Part shown: positions 16,519-27,712 of the stretch, one piece after another
Position numbering within the stretch: position 1 is the first letter of the stretch
Layout of the letters: each line of letters opens with the position of its first letter
Origin: Diplonema japonicum
Taxonomy: Eukaryota; Protista; Euglenozoa: Diplonemea
Assembly (NCBI GenBank): GCA_964019335.1
Contig: OZ025719.1
Coordinates: 372,001 to 436,000, forward strand
Direction of reading: 5' to 3'
DNA: 64,000 nucleotides
Notes under the pieces: model-generated
What the model saw: the letters and a program-made list of their open reading frames with translations, nothing else
Database searches by the model: none
Told to the model about the DNA's origin: nothing
Translations under genes and position numbers: made by a program

Positions 16519-17256
16519 TAGTACCCCCTTTTACTTTCACCCCCCCCCCCCTTCCTGCCGATATCTACTATCCATGGCAGCCGGCACTTTAACTGTGCGG
16601 GGGGGGGGTACTTTTTTGTTTTGATCAGATCTGTGTCTTTATTTTTTTTTTTTCCCCGATCATTCTTTATTCTCGTCTGTCTTGCCTTCTTTAAAGAGTT
16701 TGAATTCTTTTCTTTTTTTAATTACTGTAAGGTGACAAAAAAAAAATGACAAAAAAACTCCCGGACCGCCAAAAAGAAAAAATGAAATAACTCCGGCATT
16801 TGTCAGCCCCGTGAATTTTTTTTTTTCCTAAGGATACTTTTTCTTAAAATGAACTTACCGGCGAGGAAGCAGCTGTTTGCGCAGTTCGGCTGCCCCCCAA
16901 CTATTTCATTACAATGAGCCGCAGTGGCCCGCAGCCCAGGTCAGGGTGAGTCAGGCCTCCAAACGGCCTTCAAGAAGAAATCCCGAATTGAAAATGGCTT
17001 GGCCTGACAGACTCCCGGACATGGGAAAGACACCGTCATTGTCAGTCCGAGGGAGCTTTCCACTTTTATAGTAATTTATGTTGTCTCTTCGTTTCCTGGG
17101 GGGGATAATAACAATAATAATAAAAAAAAAAGCACACATTTCTTCTTTAAGAAATCCAGGTTCACATTGTCGATTACATCGAGAATATATAAAAGAAACG
17201 GAAAAAAAAAAAAAGAAAAAAAAAAAACTGTTTGTTAAGTTTTTTTGTATTACAAT

Positions 17257-20200
17257 ATGACTGTTCTCCCAAGTGCTTGGTTACGTGTGGTTGTTACAAG
17301 AGAAAATCCGATTAAAAGAGTGATATGTTTCCCCCATTCGGGGGGTGGTGTGTCTGTGTTTAGTGGGTGGGAGGCGCTCCCTTCGGATATGGAGGTGGTG
17401 GTGATAAACATGCCAGGAAGGAACGACCGAAGCAACGAAATACCAATTGAAAACTGTGATGTTCTTGTGAGTGAAGTGTGCGGTGCACTGCGCGAGAGCG
17501 GTGCCTTGTCTCTCCCGTATGCGTTTTTCGGGCATTCGTTTGGTGCTCTCGTTGCATTTGAAGTCGCTATAACTCTGAAACCTCTCAGAACGGAACTCCA
17601 GCCCCTCCACATCTTCGCCTCGTCTGAAGAATCCCCGTACTCTCTCTCCTCCCGTGTCCTCCCTGAGCTTATGTACACAATGTCCGACTCTGATTTCTTG
17701 ACAGCTGTCAATAAATGGGGTTACCTCCCCACAGAGCTTGGTGATGATGCTTCGCTCCAAGCAGCTGTTCTCCCTTCCCTTCGTGCCGATATTGCTATGT
17801 TCGAAAAGTACCGTGGCAGCAAAGCCAAGCTCGGTAAGGAGACCACTGTGTCCGTCCTTGCTGGCAGGAACGACGCATCACTTGAACAGGAAAACCTTGT
17901 TAGCTGGGCGGAAAACGTCGCCAGCAGCAACCCCGAGGTGGTCCTTTTCGAAGGCGGTCACTTCTATTTCTCTGAATCCCCTTCCGGTCTCAACAATGCC
18001 CTTTCTCATGTTTCATCTGTGCTGTCTTCCCGCATGGCTGCCTTACCTCTCTCCATCCAAAACGGCGGCGACGCCCCCCATCTACACAACCCCAAATGCG
18101 TCTGGGAACTCTTCGAGGAACGGGTGAAATGTTCGCCCAACAGCGTCGCCATCGTCGACAACATCCGCGGCGAGCTCACTTACAGCGACACCTGGAAGCT
18201 GTGTCTTAAAATCGCTAAACAGATCGCTTCCTGCAGCAAGCGTGGCGCCACTGTGGGCATGATGCTCCCTCACAGCTCCGACTACGTCTGCGCCATGTTT
18301 GGAATATGGATCGCTGGCGGGTGCTTTCTTGTTCTCGAACGCCACCACCCACCTGAGATGCTACGCATGGTGTGCTCCACTTGCAACCCTGATGGCAGTG
18401 GAAAGCCGGACATCATCGTGACACTTACCGAGTGTCTTCCATCCTTCACAGGTATCCTTGCGGATGTTCCGAAGATCCTCCTTGACAAGGGGTGGGAGGA
18501 GCGCTGCGACTACAGCGGCTACATTGCCCAGCCCGGGAACCTCGATGACAGGGCGATCCTCATGACCACCTCGGGCACATCAGGCCTGCCCAAACTCATC
18601 GAAGGATCGCAGAGGTTTCAGCAAGTGGGCATGCTGAGCAGGACCACGCTTATGCCGTACACCGGCACACCATTGACGACGAACGCCGACAGGGAGGCCT
18701 GCTCCGTAATGTTCGTATGGGAAGCTCCCAGGAGTCTTGTCACGGGGCATATCTGCGTTGTCATCCCCGAAACTGTCATCATCGACCCCATCAAGCTGGT
18801 GGAGTTCCTCGTAGAACACAAATGCACTAGGATCCTCACCACACCGTCACTAGCGAACCACGTGTACGACTTCTTGGAATCAAACCAAGAGGTCACAGAG
18901 CAGCTGCAGAGCACTATGAAGAGGTGGTTCTTCATGGGGGAGGTTTGCACCGCTAAGCTTGTAACACAGGCACTGAGGGTCGTGCCTAAGATACAAGTGA
19001 TCAACGCTTACTCCACTTGGGAAGGCGCTGATACGACATTGCTGAAGGGGAGCACGGACTACCTGAAACCCTACAAGAAGTTCTACCCTGTTGGGGAGCT
19101 GCATGAGGGCGTCGTGGCCGTTGTTGTTGACCCTGCCACACGGAAACCTGTTCCCAGGAATGTGCCTGGCGAGCTGTTTACAACTGGGCCGCAGCTTGCG
19201 AATGGGTATTCGATGGCACCGGAGCTAACTGCTGAGCGTTACATCAACCTGGGGATCACCAGTGAGGGGCTGACGGGCAGCGAAAGGTGGTACAAGTCAG
19301 GCGACCTAGCAGTGATGTTCAACGACGGGAAGATCGAACTCCATGGAAGGATCGACTCTACAGTAAAGATTAGGGGGTTCAAAGTGGGCCTGCCATTCGT
19401 GGAGGGCATCCTTCTTGACACACCAGACGTCGCTGTTGCTGTAGTGGTGCCCACCTTCGACAAGGAGTCAAACCAACCTGACGCGCTTGCTGCGCTCATT
19501 TCCTCTGCGGGAGACTTGAGCTTTAATGAGCTTGTGGCATCCATCAAGAAAGATATTATCACCAAGATGCCTAAGTGGGCGGCGCCAACCTTCTACCTGC
19601 GCATCGAGGACATCATTGAAGGCGAGCTGAGGCAGGGCGGTGAGAGCAAGAAGATCAACCGACGCGCCATACCGAAGCTCTTCACCAAGGAGCTAAAGGA
19701 CCGCTTCAGGGTGAAATCTTCAACACCCAAGGTTGTGAGGGAGGGCGTTGAGGGTGTTATTTATAACATATGGATCGAGGTGCTGGACCTAGACCACTCC
19801 TTCGACCCTAACGACAACTTCTTTGAGCTAGGCGGGCACTCCTTGTTGGCTTCAACAATGACGCAGAAGCTCAGCGAAGCTACTCACGTCGACATCAGCG
19901 TCCTTGACCTCTACGAGAACAGTACCTTTCACACTCTTGTAAAGTTTGTGATGTCTAGTTCCAGCCCCTTGACACTGCAGCCTACGCGAAAGAAGCCCAA
20001 AGCTAGCGGTTCCATCGCCATTGTTGGGATGTCGGGTAGGTTCCCTGGTGCCAAAAACATTTACCAGTTCTGGGACAACCTCAAAGCGGGCGCCGTGACT
20101 CCCACCTATCACACAGCTGAGTACCTCGCGAGCAAAGGCGTCGACCCCGAGGTCATCAACCACCCAGACTTCGTGCGCGTGGCGTACAAGGTCGATGAAG

Positions 20201-23200
20201 CTGATAAGTTCGACGCAAGATTCTTCGGCATCGGCCGCACGGAGGCTGCCACCATGGACCCCCAGCACCGTGTGTTCATCGAGTGTGCTTGGAACGCAAT
20301 CGAGCACGCGGGCTACGCGCCCAAGACAGGTTTCGAGACGGAAAACACCCGAGTGGGCGTCTTCGGAGCTGCAGGCATAGACGGGTACCTTGTGCACCAC
20401 CTTAACGGCGGAGCGCTCAGGACGCCTTTGGAGCCGGGCAACCTCTTCATGACCGAGGTGGCATCGGAGAAGGATTACATCGCCACGAGGGTCTCGTATC
20501 TGCTAAACTTGCGGGGGCCTTCCATGAACGTCAACTCCGCGTGCAGTTCTGCACTGGTAGCAGTGAGCCAAGCCTGCACCTCCATCGTCATGGGCGAGTG
20601 CGACATGGCAGTGGCAGGGGCTGCATCCCTGAACTTCCCCAACATCGGGTTCTTGTATCAAGACGGGCTGGTGTTCTCAAAGGATGGTCTAGTCAAACCA
20701 CTGGACGAGTCTGCAGACGGCACAGCATTCGGGGACTCTGTCGGTGCTGTTGTTCTGAAGAGGCTGGAGGATGCAGAGGCCGACGGTGACGACATCTGGG
20801 GTGTCATCAAAGGCTTCGGTGTCTCGAACGACGGCAATGTCAAAGCAGGGTACTCAGCACCAGCTGCAGCGGGGCAGGCAGACTGCATCTCCAAAGCCAT
20901 GGCCATGAACGACACAAAACCAGAGGACATTAGCTATGTAGAGATGCACGCAACGGGCACCCTTGTAGGCGATGGGATTGAAGCGAAGGGTCTTGCTAAA
21001 GCGTGGAAAACGCAGGGGCTTGCACAGAGCGATGATAAATGGTGCGCTGTTGGCAGTGTGAAGGGGAACATCGGGCATGCAAACTGCGCGGCAGGTATCA
21101 CAGGTCTGATCAAAACTGTGATGATGTTGAAGCATCAGGAGCTTGTCCCTGTAGCTAACTACACAAAACTGAATGAGAAAGTACTGTTAGACGGGACCCC
21201 CTTCTACGTCAATGACAAAGCAAGGCACTGGGAGGCTCCGAAGAACGGCGTCCGTACTGCGGGAGTCTCGTCCTTCGGAATCGGGGGAACCAACGCGCAC
21301 GTCATCGTTGGAGAGTATTCCAAAAAGGTAGACAAGACGCCTCCTTCCGCTGCCTACGTCACCTTGCAGTTCTCTGCTAAGTCTCAAGACAGCTTAAGTG
21401 GAACCATCGCCGACTTCAGTGCCTACATCACCTCAGACCTCTGCACAGAATCCCTGGTGGACGTAGCACACACCCTGCGTACTGGCCGAGAGCAGTTCAT
21501 GGTGCGCTCCACAGTGACCGTCAAGGCAAATGCAACCAAAGCAGAGCTCAAACAAGCTCTCCAGTCCGCGGCACCTGTTAAAGCTGTACGCAAACCCATA
21601 CTTGCTTTCCTCTGCCCTGGTCAGGGATCGCAATACCTAGGGATGGCCAAAGGCCTCTGCGCCTTGCCTACTTTTAAAAAACACTTCGATGACTGCTGCG
21701 AGCGTCTGACGCCGCTAATTGGTAGGGACCTCAGGAGCGCACTGTTCAACGAAGATGACATGGAGGCCTTTAAGAACCCCGCTGTGCTACAGCCCAGTCT
21801 GTTCACAGTCGAGTACTGTGTCGCGAAGCTGCTCATGTCAGCAGGCGTGACTCCCAGTGCACTGGCCGGGCACTCTATTGGTGAGTATGTGGCTGCAGTT
21901 CTTGGGAACCACATCTCTTTGGACAGCGCCCTGAGGATCGTAGCAACACGTGCGACAGCAACGTCTGCTGATGTGCAGGAAGGGGCCATGCTGTCGGTGG
22001 GTATGGATGAAGAAGTCGTGCGTGCTGCCATCAAGGAATCTGTAGGGGCTGAGGGCCTGTGGTTGGCTGCTGTGAACTCTCCCATTCATGCTGTGGTGTC
22101 TGGCACCTTAGAGGCAGTAGCCGCACTGGAGATTGAAATGCGGGCTAAAGGAGTGAAAGTGACCAAACTGCACGTGAACAGGGCTTTCCACAGCGAGCTA
22201 ATGAAGCCTGCTGGTGACAAGCTCCTTGCAATGACGTTTGAAGAGCCTGAGGGAGACCGCATCCCCATGACATCCAACGTGACAGGTGGCTGGGCTGATG
22301 ATACAGTCAGGACAGGCGTCTACTGGAAGAGGCACATGGAGGACACAGTCATGTGGAAAGGGTGCGCAAAGACGCTAATCCAGAAAGCGCAGCCGCAGGT
22401 TTGCGTGGAAGTTGGTCCTGGAGGCACCCTCAGCATCCTTGGAAACAAATGCTGCGAGCAGGGAATGGCAAAGCCCACTTTTGAGCAGAGTATGCGCCAT
22501 GCCACAGCGACTGATGCTGATGATGTGCAGGTGATTGCGTCTCTGCTTGGCAAGCTCTGGTGCAGCGGTGTGGCTGTTGACTGGGCTGCTTGGAACAAGG
22601 AGCTAGACGTCCCTAAGGGGAAGAGGGTGTCAGTGCCAGGGTATCACTTTGAGAGGACATCTTTCTGGGTGAATCCGAAAGCAAGTACGTACGTCGACGA
22701 GGACGAGGCATCTGCACCTGCTCCTGCACCTGTTAAGGTTGTGGAGGCGAACGAGAATATCCTTGTTAGGTTTGGTAAAGCTAATGAAACGCCTGCGCTG
22801 AGGATGTACTGCCTGCCGTTCGCAGGGGGGTCCAGCAGGGCTTTCGAAAGGTGGCAGTTTGCCCATGTTGATGTTGTTGCAGTTGAGCTACGTGGCAGAG
22901 GCGGGAGGATAGGAGAGAAGCACCTCGAAACAGACGCAGACGATGCCAAACAAGTGGAGGAGATTGTGACCGCTATCGAGGCTGACAGCACAGACACACC
23001 ATTCGTATTAGTCGGGATGTCCATGGGTGGGCTTATAGCATGTGAGGTGGCTATGAGGCTCAAGGAGATGGTATGCATACCAATATTAAGATATTAACAC
23101 GCACAATAGTTTCCTAAACTGCTCCTTGGAGTTGCGATAGCTGGCCGCGCGCCTGTGCGCGAGACGGCACTCATCCCTGAGCTGGAGCTCACTGACGACA

Positions 23201-25190
23201 CTCTGAGCAAGTACTCCCTAGCGCCGGAAGAGCTTCAGCAGAGCGAGGCATGGACGAGTTATCTGCTTCCGATGCTTAAGAGCGACCTGCTCAGCGACAC
23301 CAGGACAGAGAAAAGGCTCTCGCGACTGCAGAAGCCATTCCTTCCTGAGCTGGGCATGACAGTGCTCTGCGGCACGGAGGACCCCATCTTCAAGTGGGAC
23401 GATGCTGACGAGTGGCGCGATGCCGTCGCTGGTGATGAGGTTCGTGTGGGGTTCATGCCTGGCGGGCATGACTTCCTCACAAACCACGGGAAGCGGATTG
23501 CAGAAGCTGTTTCCAAAGATGCCCTCAACTGGCTCATACAGTTGAAGACACGCGAGCTTACGGCCATCACATCCCTCAAGGAAACCATCACCGTCCCCAC
23601 CGTCACCCCTGCGCCTCTCTACTCTATCGAATGGCGACAGGCTACAATCGGGGAAACCAAAGATGTTGCAGCAGTTGCTTACAACGTGATGGAGCTGCCT
23701 AAGCCGACGGACGTTCTAGAAGCCATTCAAGAACAGGCCTTTGTTGTGTACTTGGACAGTGCTGCCACACATGAGGATGCAACGGCCAGTGGGTGGCTGT
23801 TGGTGAAATGGTTGAAAGAGCTGAATCAAGCTGGTGTTGGCAAGGGGGGTGTCATCACCCTGGTGCTACCAAAGAGCAGCAACAGCGGCTTCATGGCAGG
23901 TGCCTCGAAGGCTGTTCCTTTCGAGATCCCTGAGCTGCGCCTGCGTCGTGCTTACACATCACAGGACACCACTCGTCCCTCCACCCATGCACTCTGCCTG
24001 AGGTCCCTGTCAGCTGTTGCCGACGATGATCTGGATTTGGATGCCAAAAAGGCACCAAAACTGGTGAAGAGTGTTGCTCTGTCACAGCTGAAGAAGGCTG
24101 TCCCAGATACAGGGCATGCCTTCGTCGTGACCGGGTGGACAGGCGGCTTGGGCAACGAGGCGCTCTCGTGGATGGTGAAGAAAGGTGGTGTCAAGCCTGA
24201 GCATGTGGTGTTGATGTCAAGGCGGCAGGTCGAGGCGCCCTTCGCGGGCATGAAGGTTGTGGTGTGCAGCGATCTTGGGAACACAGAGGAGGTGAGACGG
24301 GGACTGGCATCGTGTGCCGACGTGCTGCGGATGCCTGTCGGGATCCTGCATCTTGCAGGGGCGCTCGATGACGCCATGATCTCCAACCAGACAGAGGCAA
24401 AGTATGCAACTGCGATAGGCCCCAAGGTGGGTGTGCTGCGCAGTGTGTACAGGGCACTCGAGAGGCCTCCGCAGTGGGTGCTGGCTTTCTCGTCGACATC
24501 TTCACTATTCGGATATCCAGGACAGGCGAACTACTGTGCTGCGAATGGGTACGTAGATGCACTGACGCAGTGGGGCGGGGAGTTTGCATGCAAGGTGACA
24601 GCGATCTCGTGGGGCCCGTGGGGGGAGGTAGGCATGGCGAAGAAAGGAACGAAGGCCCACACCCTAGCACTGAAGGATGGCGACACACCATTGGCAACGC
24701 TGCCTGCCCTGTGCTGCCTGGGACATGTCATGGCGAAGCTAGTACGCGGTGAGGAGACAGCTGCACAGTATGCTGTGTGCGACGTGGATTGGAATAAGTC
24801 CCCGTGGCAAGACCTCCCTTGCCTGAGTGCTTTCAAGCGAGCACCATCAAGTACCCCCGTTGGGCAGGACGCTGCTGCCGCTGATGAGTCCTTCGCTGCA
24901 CAGCTCAGAACATGGCTGCTGCATGAAGTTGACAGAACATCGTGGGACGCAGTGATGGATGAGGTACGGGAGGGGGGAAAAAAAACCCCCAAACACACAT
25001 CAGGACATGGCCTCTCTCGGCCTCGACTCCCTCGACACCGTGCAGCTGCGCAACGCGTTCAACAAGAGGTTTAAGGTATGATTTTTGAAGAGGGAAAAAA
25101 AAAAAAAAAAAACAGAAAATCGCACCGCTGTCACTGTTCTCAAAGCCAAACTTGACTATGAGATCCCTTCACACTTCTTTAACAGAGTAG
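17257..25190 (+). CDS. Hybrid NRPS-PKS, BurA-like: TE-A-PCP-KS-AT-TE-KR-ACP (~2604 aa)
   Basis: Exons 17257-23070, 23110-24963, 25004-25075, 25116-25190; introns of 39, 40 and 40 nt, all GT-AG and frame-restoring. TE1 CFPHSGGG/GHSFG/GGHFY; A TTSGTSGLPK, WYKSGDL, GRIDSTVKIRG; PCP FFELGGHSL; KS NSACSSAL, HATGT, NIGH; AT GQGSQ, GHSIG, RAFHS; TE2 CLPFAGGS/GMSMG/GGHDF; KR TGWTGGLG, HLAGALDD, YCAAN; ACP LGLDSL. Confidence 0.93.
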
Positions 25191-25378
25191 AATGAGATAA
25201 GGGAACGGGGGGGGGGGGGATATTTACAAAAAAAAACAAAACAAAACAAAAAAAGAAGAGTTCAAAGCACTCCCCTCTATTTGGGGTGCCGGAGTAGGCA
25301 CGAAGGATAAAGGCCTACCCTGTTGAAATGTGGACAAGAGGCTTGAAGGTTGAATGTTTCTAATTATCTTTTTTTTTT

Positions 25379-25494
25379 GTTTTAACAATATTATTGTCGA
25401 GACTAAAAACTAGTTGATGGCAGCGTAATGAGCTATTTTATTAGGTAAAATTCCGCTCGTGCGCACAAACAAATGGAGCGCCAAACTAGTTTTT
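25379..25494. repeat. Dispersed repeat family A, copy 1 (~115 bp)
   Basis: Near-identical to 39877-39990; contains the inverted pair AAAAACTAGTT...AACTAGTTTTT. Confidence 0.9.
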
Positions 25495-26486
25495 GAGACA
25501 ACTGTTCGCGCGCAAGCGAAAAGACTTTTTTTTAAAAGTTCCTACCATCTAGGTGAAGGAAAATTTTGCTTCCTGTGATGGTTTTCCATTTTTCTTTACT
25601 CTCGTAGAATCTTTCTTCGTTATTCGTTAGGTGTTTGCTTTTTTTTTTTTTTTTTTTTTTTTTCAACGTGAGAAGGTTTTCACCTTTATCAAATTTTTTA
25701 AAAGGAAGAATGGGTAAGAAGATCGCCCAGTTTTTTGCATTGCCGTGCGAGGCACCGAAAGAACAAAAAAGAAAAAGAAAGAAAATGAGGTTCCTTCCCC
25801 CCATCAAAAGAAAGATTGTTTCTTGAGGTGATAAGGGGGGTTATCTTTCTTCTTTCTATTTCTTCTTCCACACCCCCCTCACCCCTTCTCTCCACCGGCT
25901 TCTTTTCTTTATACAAATAAAGAAGAAGAAAGAAATGTAAAACAGAAATAATAATAATAATAATAAAACAAAAGGTGAATTGATGCAAAAGGGCAAAGAT
26001 ATAGTTCTTTTTTTTTTTCTCTCTCTCTTTTTATTCTTAAATTATGGACATATTATAATTTTGTTTCAAAAAGAAAATACTTTTTATCTTCTTTCTTGAT
26101 TACCCGGCTCCCTTTCTGTGCCTGCCCTTTGCGTGAAAGATTGACATGTTGAGAGTGGTATTGTGTGTTCCCCCCCCCCCCCCCCCCCTTTCTCTCTCTC
26201 TCTCTTTTCTCTTCGTTCTTTCTCCAACGAGGAGGGAAGGGAGAAAAAGAAAATATGTAAAACGAAATCCGCATTTTTTTTCTTTTTTTTTTTTTTTGCC
26301 AATCTCAAACTTCCGGGTGTTTTTGGCTCCCCTTCTAAATTGACTGGGGAAACTAAATAGAGACTCGCTCTTATTCTTTCTCTTTTTTAGTGTGTTGTTT
26401 TTGCATAGTTTGCTATGCTGGTGTACTGTGCGCGCGATATGTATATTGTTTAAACATTTTTTTTCTTCTTTTTGTGATTTTGTGCT

Positions 26487-26525
<39 letters not shown>

Positions 26526-26644
26526 CACTTTTTCTTTTTCTCTTTTGCTTTACTCTTTTCTCCCTGGTTTTTCTCTCTATTTTTTTGGGGGGTGTCGTAT
26601 CTGCTCCCCCAATAGTAATGAGTTTTCTTTCTGTCGTTTCCATT

Positions 26645-26700
<56 letters not shown>

Positions 26701-26897
26701 CTCTAGCCAAGCATCCCCCCTTTATTTTCTCCCCCCCCGTCAAACAAAAGAAATAATTTTTTCTTGTTTACGTAAGTTTCTTTTAAAAAGGAAAATGTAT
26801 TTTTTTTTTCTTCTTTGCTTTCCCCCCTCCTACAAAACACAGCACAATATATAAAAAAAAAAAAAAAAAAAAGAAGGGAAAAAAAAAAAAAGACACG

Positions 26898-27592
26898 ATG
26901 CTAAGCGAGACGAAAGTAACTCAGGAAGAGGCGACCAAGGTATACAGGGAAAATAATAAAAACGAGTTTAAAAAAAAAAAAAAAAGAAGCCCCACAAAAA
27001 AAAAAAAAAAAAAAAAAAAAAGGGCTTAGATTTAGACACTGTGAACGAGCATCTTTTGGAAAAGGAGGACGGCGAGCTTAGCTTCAATGAACTAGAGAAA
27101 TACAAGAAGGGCACCACGTTCAGCAGGGCACAGGTACAGAAGTTGCACAGGAGGTACGCGGGGATCAAGGGGGAGAAGCAACATGCGGACAAAGAGGATA
27201 TTATAAGGGTGATGCCGCATACGCTGAAGAACAGCTTCATCCTGGACAGAATGGTGGACGTGGCCTGCAGGGGGACGGGGAAGATAGATTTTGCAGCCTT
27301 TCTAACCATCTTTTCACCATTCGAGCTATCCTGTCCACAGGACACACAACGGGAATACCTTTTCTCGCTATACGACATAGATGGTGACGGGAAGGTCTCA
27401 CCTGGCGACCTGCACCACGTCTTCAGCCGCCTCTTTGATGGTGCCCCCGACAGCCAGATACACCAGATCGTCAACAACACCTTCCAATCTCTCGACGTGG
27501 ATCTGGACGGCTACCTCCTTGTCACCGACTTCAAGGCTGCCAACGAGAACGTGCTCTCCATCATGCACTGCCCATTCTCGTCGCAGGGGTGA
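26898..27592 (+). CDS. Calcineurin B-like / CIB-type EF-hand calcium-binding protein
   Basis: Exons 26898-26939 and 27023-27592 (intron GTATAC...AAG, phase 0). TTFSRAQVQKLHRRY, GKIDFAAFL, FSLYDIDGDGKVS, LDVDLDGYL. Confidence 0.85.
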
Positions 27593-27604
27593 GAATAATA
27601 AGGT

Positions 27605-27636
<32 letters not shown>

Positions 27637-27712
27637 TTTTTGTTTGTTCTTCTAGATAGTATTCTTGATTGTGTCCTTGTGCACTATCTATTGTCTCTCC
27701 CTTAGGGAAAAA

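Follow-up and report, generated by a model that had tools for sequence, protein, structure and literature searches.

The window analysed here is a stretch of 64,000 nucleotides (64 kb) from contig OZ025719.1 of the diplonemid Diplonema japonicum (positions 372,001 to 436,000), and all coordinates below refer to this window unless another contig is named. At 17257-25190 on the plus strand, it holds a nuclear gene for a hybrid of nonribosomal peptide synthetase (NRPS) and polyketide synthase (PKS). This gene resembles that of the bacterial enzyme BurA and is discussed here as encoding a putative synthase of the sulfonium compound gonyol. In the open reading frame (ORF) listing, the locus appears as two long plus-strand ORFs, at 17245-23097 and 23155-25074. 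The whole gene, from ATG to TAG, comprises four exons, three introns and 2604 codons. Its full-length product is represented by the database protein P0001, a 'complete' ORF of 2604 amino acids (aa) from a EukProt Trinity transcriptome. The exons were searched individually, and in the protein search exon 1 is 100% identical to P0001. Placed on the three plus-strand frames, P0001 maps along its entire length (100%) to four exons with zero mismatches.

Exon 1 (17257-23070; aa 1-1938) encodes an N-terminal thioesterase (TE-A), an adenylation (A) domain, a peptidyl carrier protein (PCP), a ketosynthase (KS), an acyltransferase (AT) and the first part of a second, intramodular thioesterase (TE-B). 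Intron 1 (23071-23109; 39 nt) contains an in-frame TAA and splits TE-B 16 codons past its catalytic serine. The remainder of TE-B, a ketoreductase (KR) and the start of an acyl carrier protein (ACP) are encoded by exon 2 (23110-24963; aa 1939-2556). After intron 2 (24964-25003; 40 nt) comes a micro-exon, exon 3 (25004-25075; aa 2557-2580), which carries the LGLDSL motif of the ACP with Ser2565 at 25028-25030. Intron 3 (25076-25115; 40 nt) separates it from exon 4 (25116-25190; aa 2581-2604), which ends with the TAG stop codon at 25188-25190. All three introns begin with GT and end with AG, and the two micro-exons, of 24 codons each, complete the ACP.

Thus, the gene is real and is expressed as a spliced transcript. 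A preliminary description, made from the letters of the window, had proposed three introns of about 40 nt and the joining of the two large ORFs and two micro-exons into a protein of about 2604 aa; P0001 fits these exons exactly and has precisely that length. The same description held that its reading of the gene would fall if transcripts stopped at 23097 without splicing. This is not what is found, because the full transcript ORF crosses all four exons. Two truncated models of related proteins, P0003 and P0004, stop in the alignment close to the position of intron 1, not at intron 1 itself. At the DNA level, the locus is covered in unspliced form by contigs from three public runs, and the gene is single-copy in the assembly that was searched (62.5 Mb, 132 contigs).

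Domains and active sites

Pfam searches of the window ORFs and of P0001 give the domain order TE-A, A, PCP, KS, AT, TE-B, KR, ACP. In the ORF at 17245-23094 they recognise a thioesterase, an AMP-binding domain, a PP-binding domain, both the N- and C-terminal parts of a KS, an AT and the beginning of another alpha/beta hydrolase, and in the ORF at 23155-25071 a KR. A condensation domain was not detected by Pfam in either the window ORFs or P0001, in line with the preliminary description.

The NRPS-like part begins with TE-A (17317-18012; aa 21-252; PF00975), which resembles type II thioesterases. It carries a GHSFG motif with Ser94 at 17536-17538, the counterpart of BurA Ser90 in the alignment, and also a GGH motif. 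The A domain (18067-19656; aa 271-800) was delimited by PF00501 (aa 286-651), TIGR01733 and the signature columns; its A4 loop, SVMFVWE, lies at 18703-18723 and Asp592 at 19030-19032. It is followed by the PCP (19759-19950; aa 835-898; PF00550), whose GGHS motif includes Ser862 at 19840-19842.

In the PKS part, the KS (20011-21162; aa 919-1302; PF00109 and PF02801) has Cys1096 at 20542-20544, together with His1231 and His1274. The AT (21607-22461; aa 1451-1735; PF00698) is of the malonyl type and has a GHSIG motif with Ser1540 at 21874-21876. The textbook motif of malonyl-specific AT domains is HAFHS. Here the specificity motif reads RAFHS, so that an arginine replaces the first histidine while the diagnostic malonyl-type phenylalanine is retained. 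TE-B (22828-23508; aa 1858-2071; PF12697), which is split by intron 1, carries a GMSMG motif with Ser1922 at 23020-23022 and a GGHD motif. The catalytic subdomain of the KR (24121-24624; aa 2276-2443; PF08659) is B-type: it contains TGGLG, the Ser/Tyr/Asn triad and an LDD motif (aa 2357-2359; 24364-24372). Finally, the C-terminal ACP (24868-25187) spans exons 2 to 4. The TE-B and ACP serines that are essential in BurA, Ser2023 and Ser2746, match Ser1922 and Ser2565 of the window protein. In effect, all catalytic residues are kept in the alignment with 75 homologues, and the eight domains listed in the preliminary description all have intact motifs: both carrier serines, the KS triad, the AT serine with AFHS, the KR tyrosine with LDD, and two GxSxG thioesterases.

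These features also bear on the notion that the gene comes from contaminating bacteria, results from misassembly or is a pseudogene in decay. Such an origin might come to mind since most members of the family are bacterial and horizontal acquisition has been proposed for the dinoflagellate copies. Nevertheless, it is hardly credible here. The gene has three spliceosomal-type introns and a spliced transcript, its neighbours are eukaryotic genes of similar GC content on the same strand of a contig (C72) that is at least 436 kb long, and orthologues exist in Diplonema papillatum and in other assemblies. It was rejected on the grounds of the spliced transcript, the exact exon mapping and the intact active sites.

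Membership in the BurA family

BurA belongs to the malleicyprol/burkholderic acid pathway of Burkholderia thailandensis. It converts dimethylsulfoniopropionate (DMSP) and malonyl-CoA into gonyol; its TE-B frees the product from the downstream ACP, and its TE-A is dispensable (PMC9428774, PMC7496086). The TE-A, TE-B and ACP of BurA have been mutated at Ser90, Ser2023 and Ser2746, respectively (PMC9428774). Since the B. thailandensis protein P0113 (2792 aa) has serines at exactly these three published positions, it was identified as BurA. P0113 and exon 1 share 36% identity across 93% of the length of that exon, and Pfam finds the domain order of the window protein in P0113 and P0017 as well. 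Per-domain BLAST searches across the 75 homologues show that the BurA domain order recurs in about 70 proteins; these come from Actinobacteria, Proteobacteria and dinoflagellates, from a haptophyte and from diplonemid-like sources. NCBIfam contains no model that names BurA or DsyB.

The A domain provides a further signature. In canonical A domains, such as GrsA, the aspartate that binds the alpha-amino group (Asp235) lies in a loop of the A4 region; in the A domain of BurA this loop is replaced by a shorter hydrophobic one, and an acidic residue is found elsewhere in the pocket (PMC7496086). Alignment of the window protein with canonical A domains from its own genome shows that the Asp235 loop is lost through a deletion of three residues, with canonical IFDVSVWE becoming VMF---VWE. 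This alignment was made with MAFFT L-INS-i, and phmmer against the PDB gives a different register for the A4 region; neither register puts an aspartate at position 235. In addition, 71 of the 75 members have an aspartate three residues past the A5 glutamate, namely Asp592 in the window protein (NAYSTWEGAD) and Asp585 in BurA. Trp488, Glu489, Trp588, Glu589 and Asp592 are each kept in 71-74 of the 75 family members, and the two tryptophans are family-specific. Judged by its sequence, then, the window protein is a member of the BurA family: it shares the eight-domain order and the A-domain signature with a protein identified as BurA itself, which bears out the BurA-type assignment of the preliminary description.

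A comparable pocket has been described for ATRR-A, the glycine betaine-activating A domain of a fungal NRPS-like reductase, which likewise has a shortened loop that lacks Asp235 and an acidic residue elsewhere. The comparison was made by description (PMC7496086), and ATRR-A differs in belonging to an A-T-R-R reductase family with no PKS module. Two more A domains in the D. japonicum genome (C107:99295-101112 and C19:23916-25718) lack Asp235 and have FGISEWE in place of FDxS. These two may activate acids other than amino acids.

Within the family, the position of the window protein was examined with a whole-protein tree (71 rows by 2533 columns, LG+G4, quick search), a KS-only tree with other PKSs as outgroup, and an A-domain-only tree. 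In every tree, the window protein has D. papillatum PKTS1 as its sister (support 100 in the whole-protein and 99 in the A tree). These two and two or three ENA proteins form a clade (support 100, 99 and 100 in the whole-protein, KS and A trees), which in turn joins the dinoflagellate BurA-like proteins (support 100, 95 and 97). Prymnesium branches next in the whole-protein tree. Burkholderia BurA lies in a separate bacterial clade of 39 rows, and on the A-domain tree a single change suffices to account for the eukaryote label. The preliminary description had predicted that the A and KS domains would fall in the BurA clade. As for the family as a whole, this proved right for both domains and for the whole protein; nevertheless, they sit in a eukaryotic sub-clade and not beside Burkholderia.

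The best named match of the gene, D. papillatum PKTS1 (P0002), is its probable orthologue: it is 61% identical, has 2650 aa and contains all of the domains. Its name in GenBank is automatic, and no discussion of it was found in the literature searched. The dinoflagellate BurA-like proteins, known from transcripts of Amphidinium, Scrippsiella, Polarella and Karenia (PMC5725682, PMC8283056), have the same architecture at about 40% identity; the preliminary description had pointed to such hybrids in dinoflagellates. They form the sister or near-sister clade in all three trees, and they share with the window protein an A4 motif of the NVMFVWE type and the STWE..D motif in A5. They differ in their hosts, as D. 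japonicum is a heterotrophic euglenozoan and not an alveolate alga, and the gene is single-copy in its genome. The two papers discuss the BurA-like gene without assigning a product to it. With respect to BurA itself, the likeness extends to the domain order without a condensation domain, nearly full-length identity at 36%, the three serines, the deleted Asp235 loop, the aspartate past A5, the malonyl AT and the LDD-type KR. On the other hand, the window gene is eukaryotic, is interrupted by introns, is unclustered and sits on a separate branch of the tree. It should be noted that much of this framework is already known: knowledge of the architecture in dinoflagellates dates back to 2014 and that of the function of BurA to 2020, and the D. 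papillatum orthologue is in GenBank.

Predicted synthesis of gonyol

The gene product is probably a BurA-family NRPS-PKS that acts on its own in the cytosol, and gonyol made from DMSP is its most likely product. By homology with BurA, the A domain would adenylate DMSP and load it onto the PCP, while the AT would place malonyl on the C-terminal ACP. The KS would then couple starter and malonyl by decarboxylative Claisen condensation, the B-type KR would reduce the 3-keto group, and the intramodular TE-B would hydrolyse the ACP thioester to release 5-dimethylsulfonio-3-hydroxypentanoate, that is, gonyol. TE-A, at the N-terminus, may proofread mis-primed carriers. The substrate and product, and what each thioesterase does, are inferred from this comparison. 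The stereochemistry of the product can also be predicted, as LDD (B-type) reductases give D-3-hydroxy products. In gonyol this would correspond to 3S, because the sulfur-bearing branch takes priority under the Cahn-Ingold-Prelog rules, and BurA, which also has LDD, would probably give the same configuration.

Metabolite data point in the same direction. In the metabolome of D. papillatum, both gonyol (m/z 179.074) and DMSP (m/z 135.05) were verified by tandem mass spectrometry; this was reported as a surprise in a heterotroph, and the paper names no enzyme and does not mention BurA, PKS or NRPS (PMC8611851). The gene described here is the obvious candidate for the enzyme behind the gonyol measured in D. 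papillatum. Dinoflagellates and haptophytes are known gonyol producers, and one paper describes gonyol synthesis as seemingly confined to eukaryotic plankton. To our knowledge, bacterial BurA is the only known gonyol biosynthetic enzyme. No paper in the literature searched joins gonyol, diplonemids and an enzyme, or ties the dinoflagellate BurA-like genes or any diplonemid gene to gonyol.

DMSP would be supplied by a DSYB-type pathway of the organism's own. Two DSYB-like genes were found in the genome, an intronless one of 348 aa (C52:412026-413069, minus strand) and one with two exons, found by sequence search, whose product is 55% identical to the first (C1:27688-28760, minus strand). The C52 ORF matches the PDB entries 7wdw ('DSYB') and 7wdq ('MTHB methyltransferase'; MTHB, 4-methylthio-2-hydroxybutyrate) with an E value of 1e-57 and 198 bits, whereas the next O-methyltransferase family scores 68 bits. 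Its product shares 47-52% identity with homologues from dinoflagellates and haptophytes, among them P0189 at 49%, which its source names an MTHB S-methyltransferase. By their similarity to DsyB/DSYB, both genes are predicted to encode MTHB S-methyltransferases. D. papillatum likewise has two DSYB-like genes, and no mention of DSYB in diplonemids was found in the literature searched. Polarella, Prymnesium and D. papillatum are each represented among the matches of both the BurA-like and the DSYB-like proteins. Phosphopantetheinyl transferases (PPTases) are also encoded in the genome.

In bacteria, the connection with DMSP is seen in gene order. A BurA-like gene adjoins DMSP-synthesis genes in S. 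mobaraensis, A. vitis and Burkholderia (PMC9135737; B. ubonensis locus), and because bacterial BurA-like genes share operons with such genes, DMSP may be taken as the ancestral substrate of the family. The window gene does not show the linkage seen in the bacterial burB and mmtN operons, which is a trait of those operons and not of the enzyme. BurB, in the B. ubonensis locus, is a SET-domain protein and is too generic for a search in eukaryotes.

Several observations weigh against the assignment of gonyol synthesis. The assayed enzyme is bacterial BurA and not a member of the eukaryotic branch, the splicing is supported by a single transcriptome assembly, and the metabolite data come from D. 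papillatum and not from D. japonicum. In addition, the gene lies apart from any DMSP gene, as its neighbours are housekeeping genes and the DSYB-like genes lie on C52 and C1. The published pocket residue 'D606' of BurA is a glycine in the numbering of P0113, although its motif position and conservation suggest that it corresponds to Asp585 of that protein. Finally, the A domain shares only about 30% of its residues with that of BurA, and the residues that flank the pocket aspartate differ, being G-A-D-T in the window protein, S-L-D-V in BurA and S-G-D-V in dinoflagellates.

These last two differences raise the question of whether another onium acid is the preferred starter, which is possible because the residues beside the pocket aspartate are lineage-specific, G-A-D-T being the form peculiar to diplonemids. 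The chemistry would then be the same, with dimethylselenoniopropionate (DMSeP), beta-alanine betaine, dimethylsulfonioacetate or glycine betaine in place of DMSP and another 3-hydroxy zwitterion as the main product. Extension of glycine betaine by one C2 unit, followed by reduction, would yield carnitine, for instance. D. papillatum does contain DMSeP, abundant alanine-betaine derivatives and free carnitine (PMC8611851), and the A domain of BurA accepts an ammonium analogue, with an activity more than four-fold lower. Nevertheless, we regard a starter other than DMSP as rather unlikely. The positions equated with 299, 301, 322 and 330 are identical to those of BurA (F, M, A and D), bacterial members of the family are tied to DMSP synthesis, predicted DSYB-like genes offer a source of DMSP in the genome, and gonyol itself is found in D. 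papillatum.

Gonyol, or the ACP-bound chain, could also be an intermediate on the way to a more complex metabolite, as it is in malleicyprol biosynthesis in Burkholderia. The genome has several other PKS/NRPS genes, including one within an open frame of 21,455 aa, which could serve such a pathway. Nevertheless, bur-like tailoring genes are absent beside the gene and the releasing TE-B is intact. In D. papillatum, moreover, free gonyol accumulates and is counted among the osmolytes (PMC8611851). This makes an intermediate role improbable, and the proposed end-point of gonyol synthesis in diplonemids is an osmolyte, in contrast to the toxin precursor of Burkholderia.

If gonyol is indeed the product, the gene would link the orphan gonyol of diplonemids, and probably that of dinoflagellates and haptophytes, to a single-copy candidate gene and a plausible supply of DMSP. 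Together with the DSYB-like genes, it would make up a complete and testable candidate route from methionine through DMSP to gonyol in one genome, in a group that includes a genetically tractable model species, D. papillatum. More broadly, we lean, by a little, towards a view in which diplonemids make DMSP via DSYB and gonyol via the single-copy BurA-like megasynthase, with the same eukaryotic clade, spread by gene transfer among unrelated eukaryotes, acting as the gonyol synthase of dinoflagellates and haptophytes. A function would thereby be assigned to the conserved 'BurA-like' gene known in dinoflagellates since 2014, and the eukaryotic BurA-like clade could be used as a marker to map gonyol producers in ocean metatranscriptomes and in studies of the marine sulfur cycle. 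Gonyol is a widespread marine sulfonium osmolyte and interferes with bacterial DMSP turnover (PMC7221440).

Neighbouring genes and repeats

The gene stands alone among ordinary eukaryotic genes, as previously described. Among ORFs of at least 200 aa with a Pfam match, its neighbours encode UCH, LETM1, BAH, Dus, Sec16, MFS, saccharopine-dehydrogenase-like and bromodomain-MRG proteins, all on the plus strand. In fact, all large domain-bearing ORFs lie on the plus strand throughout the 64 kb, as in the one-directional arrays of kinetoplastids, yet short GT-AG introns of about 40 nt are present. The top matches of the Dus protein are EukProt/ENA proteins (59-76%); its first named matches, which come next, are from the kinetoplastids Bodo saltans and Perkinsela. 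Together with D. papillatum as the top named match of the BurA-like gene, this agrees with the euglenozoan host that had been proposed from the letters.

Orthologues of the Dus and BurA-like genes are also found on contigs of the same size in ENA assemblies, namely P0247 and P0003 (1,839,156 bases) and P0244 and P0004 (471,320 bases), which suggests that the two genes are linked in two other relatives too.

Elsewhere in the genome, the 21,455-aa frame runs uninterrupted on the minus strand at C96:~228,600-292,000. It contains 17 or more separate A-domain matches along with a KS-AT match, and would be a giant NRPS-PKS. There is a PPTase-family match at C23:459635-459844, with another KS-AT gene (C23:476085-478871) about 16 kb away.

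Directly downstream of the BurA-like gene, at 25369-25494, there is a 126-nt dispersed repeat, of which the genome has at least 542 candidate copies, on both strands. The copies that were scored are 98-100% identical. Read coverage rises about 1000-fold from the flanking DNA to the repeat, and in the contigs many different upstream sequences lead into it. Rfam gave no match in the window, this repeat included. The intergenic region at 25190-27650 is dense in homopolymer runs, with poly-T reaching some 60 nt, poly-C some 20 nt and poly-G some 13 nt. It also contains, at about 26899-27592, a small EF-hand gene that is interrupted by a short intron. Finally, in one public run (X1), which bears the label of a different organism (organism A), short contigs are 95-99% identical to the BurA-like gene at 22400-22559, 24211-24623 and 24997-25075. 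The differences are mostly silent-looking, and these contigs probably come from a closely related strain or species with the same gene.

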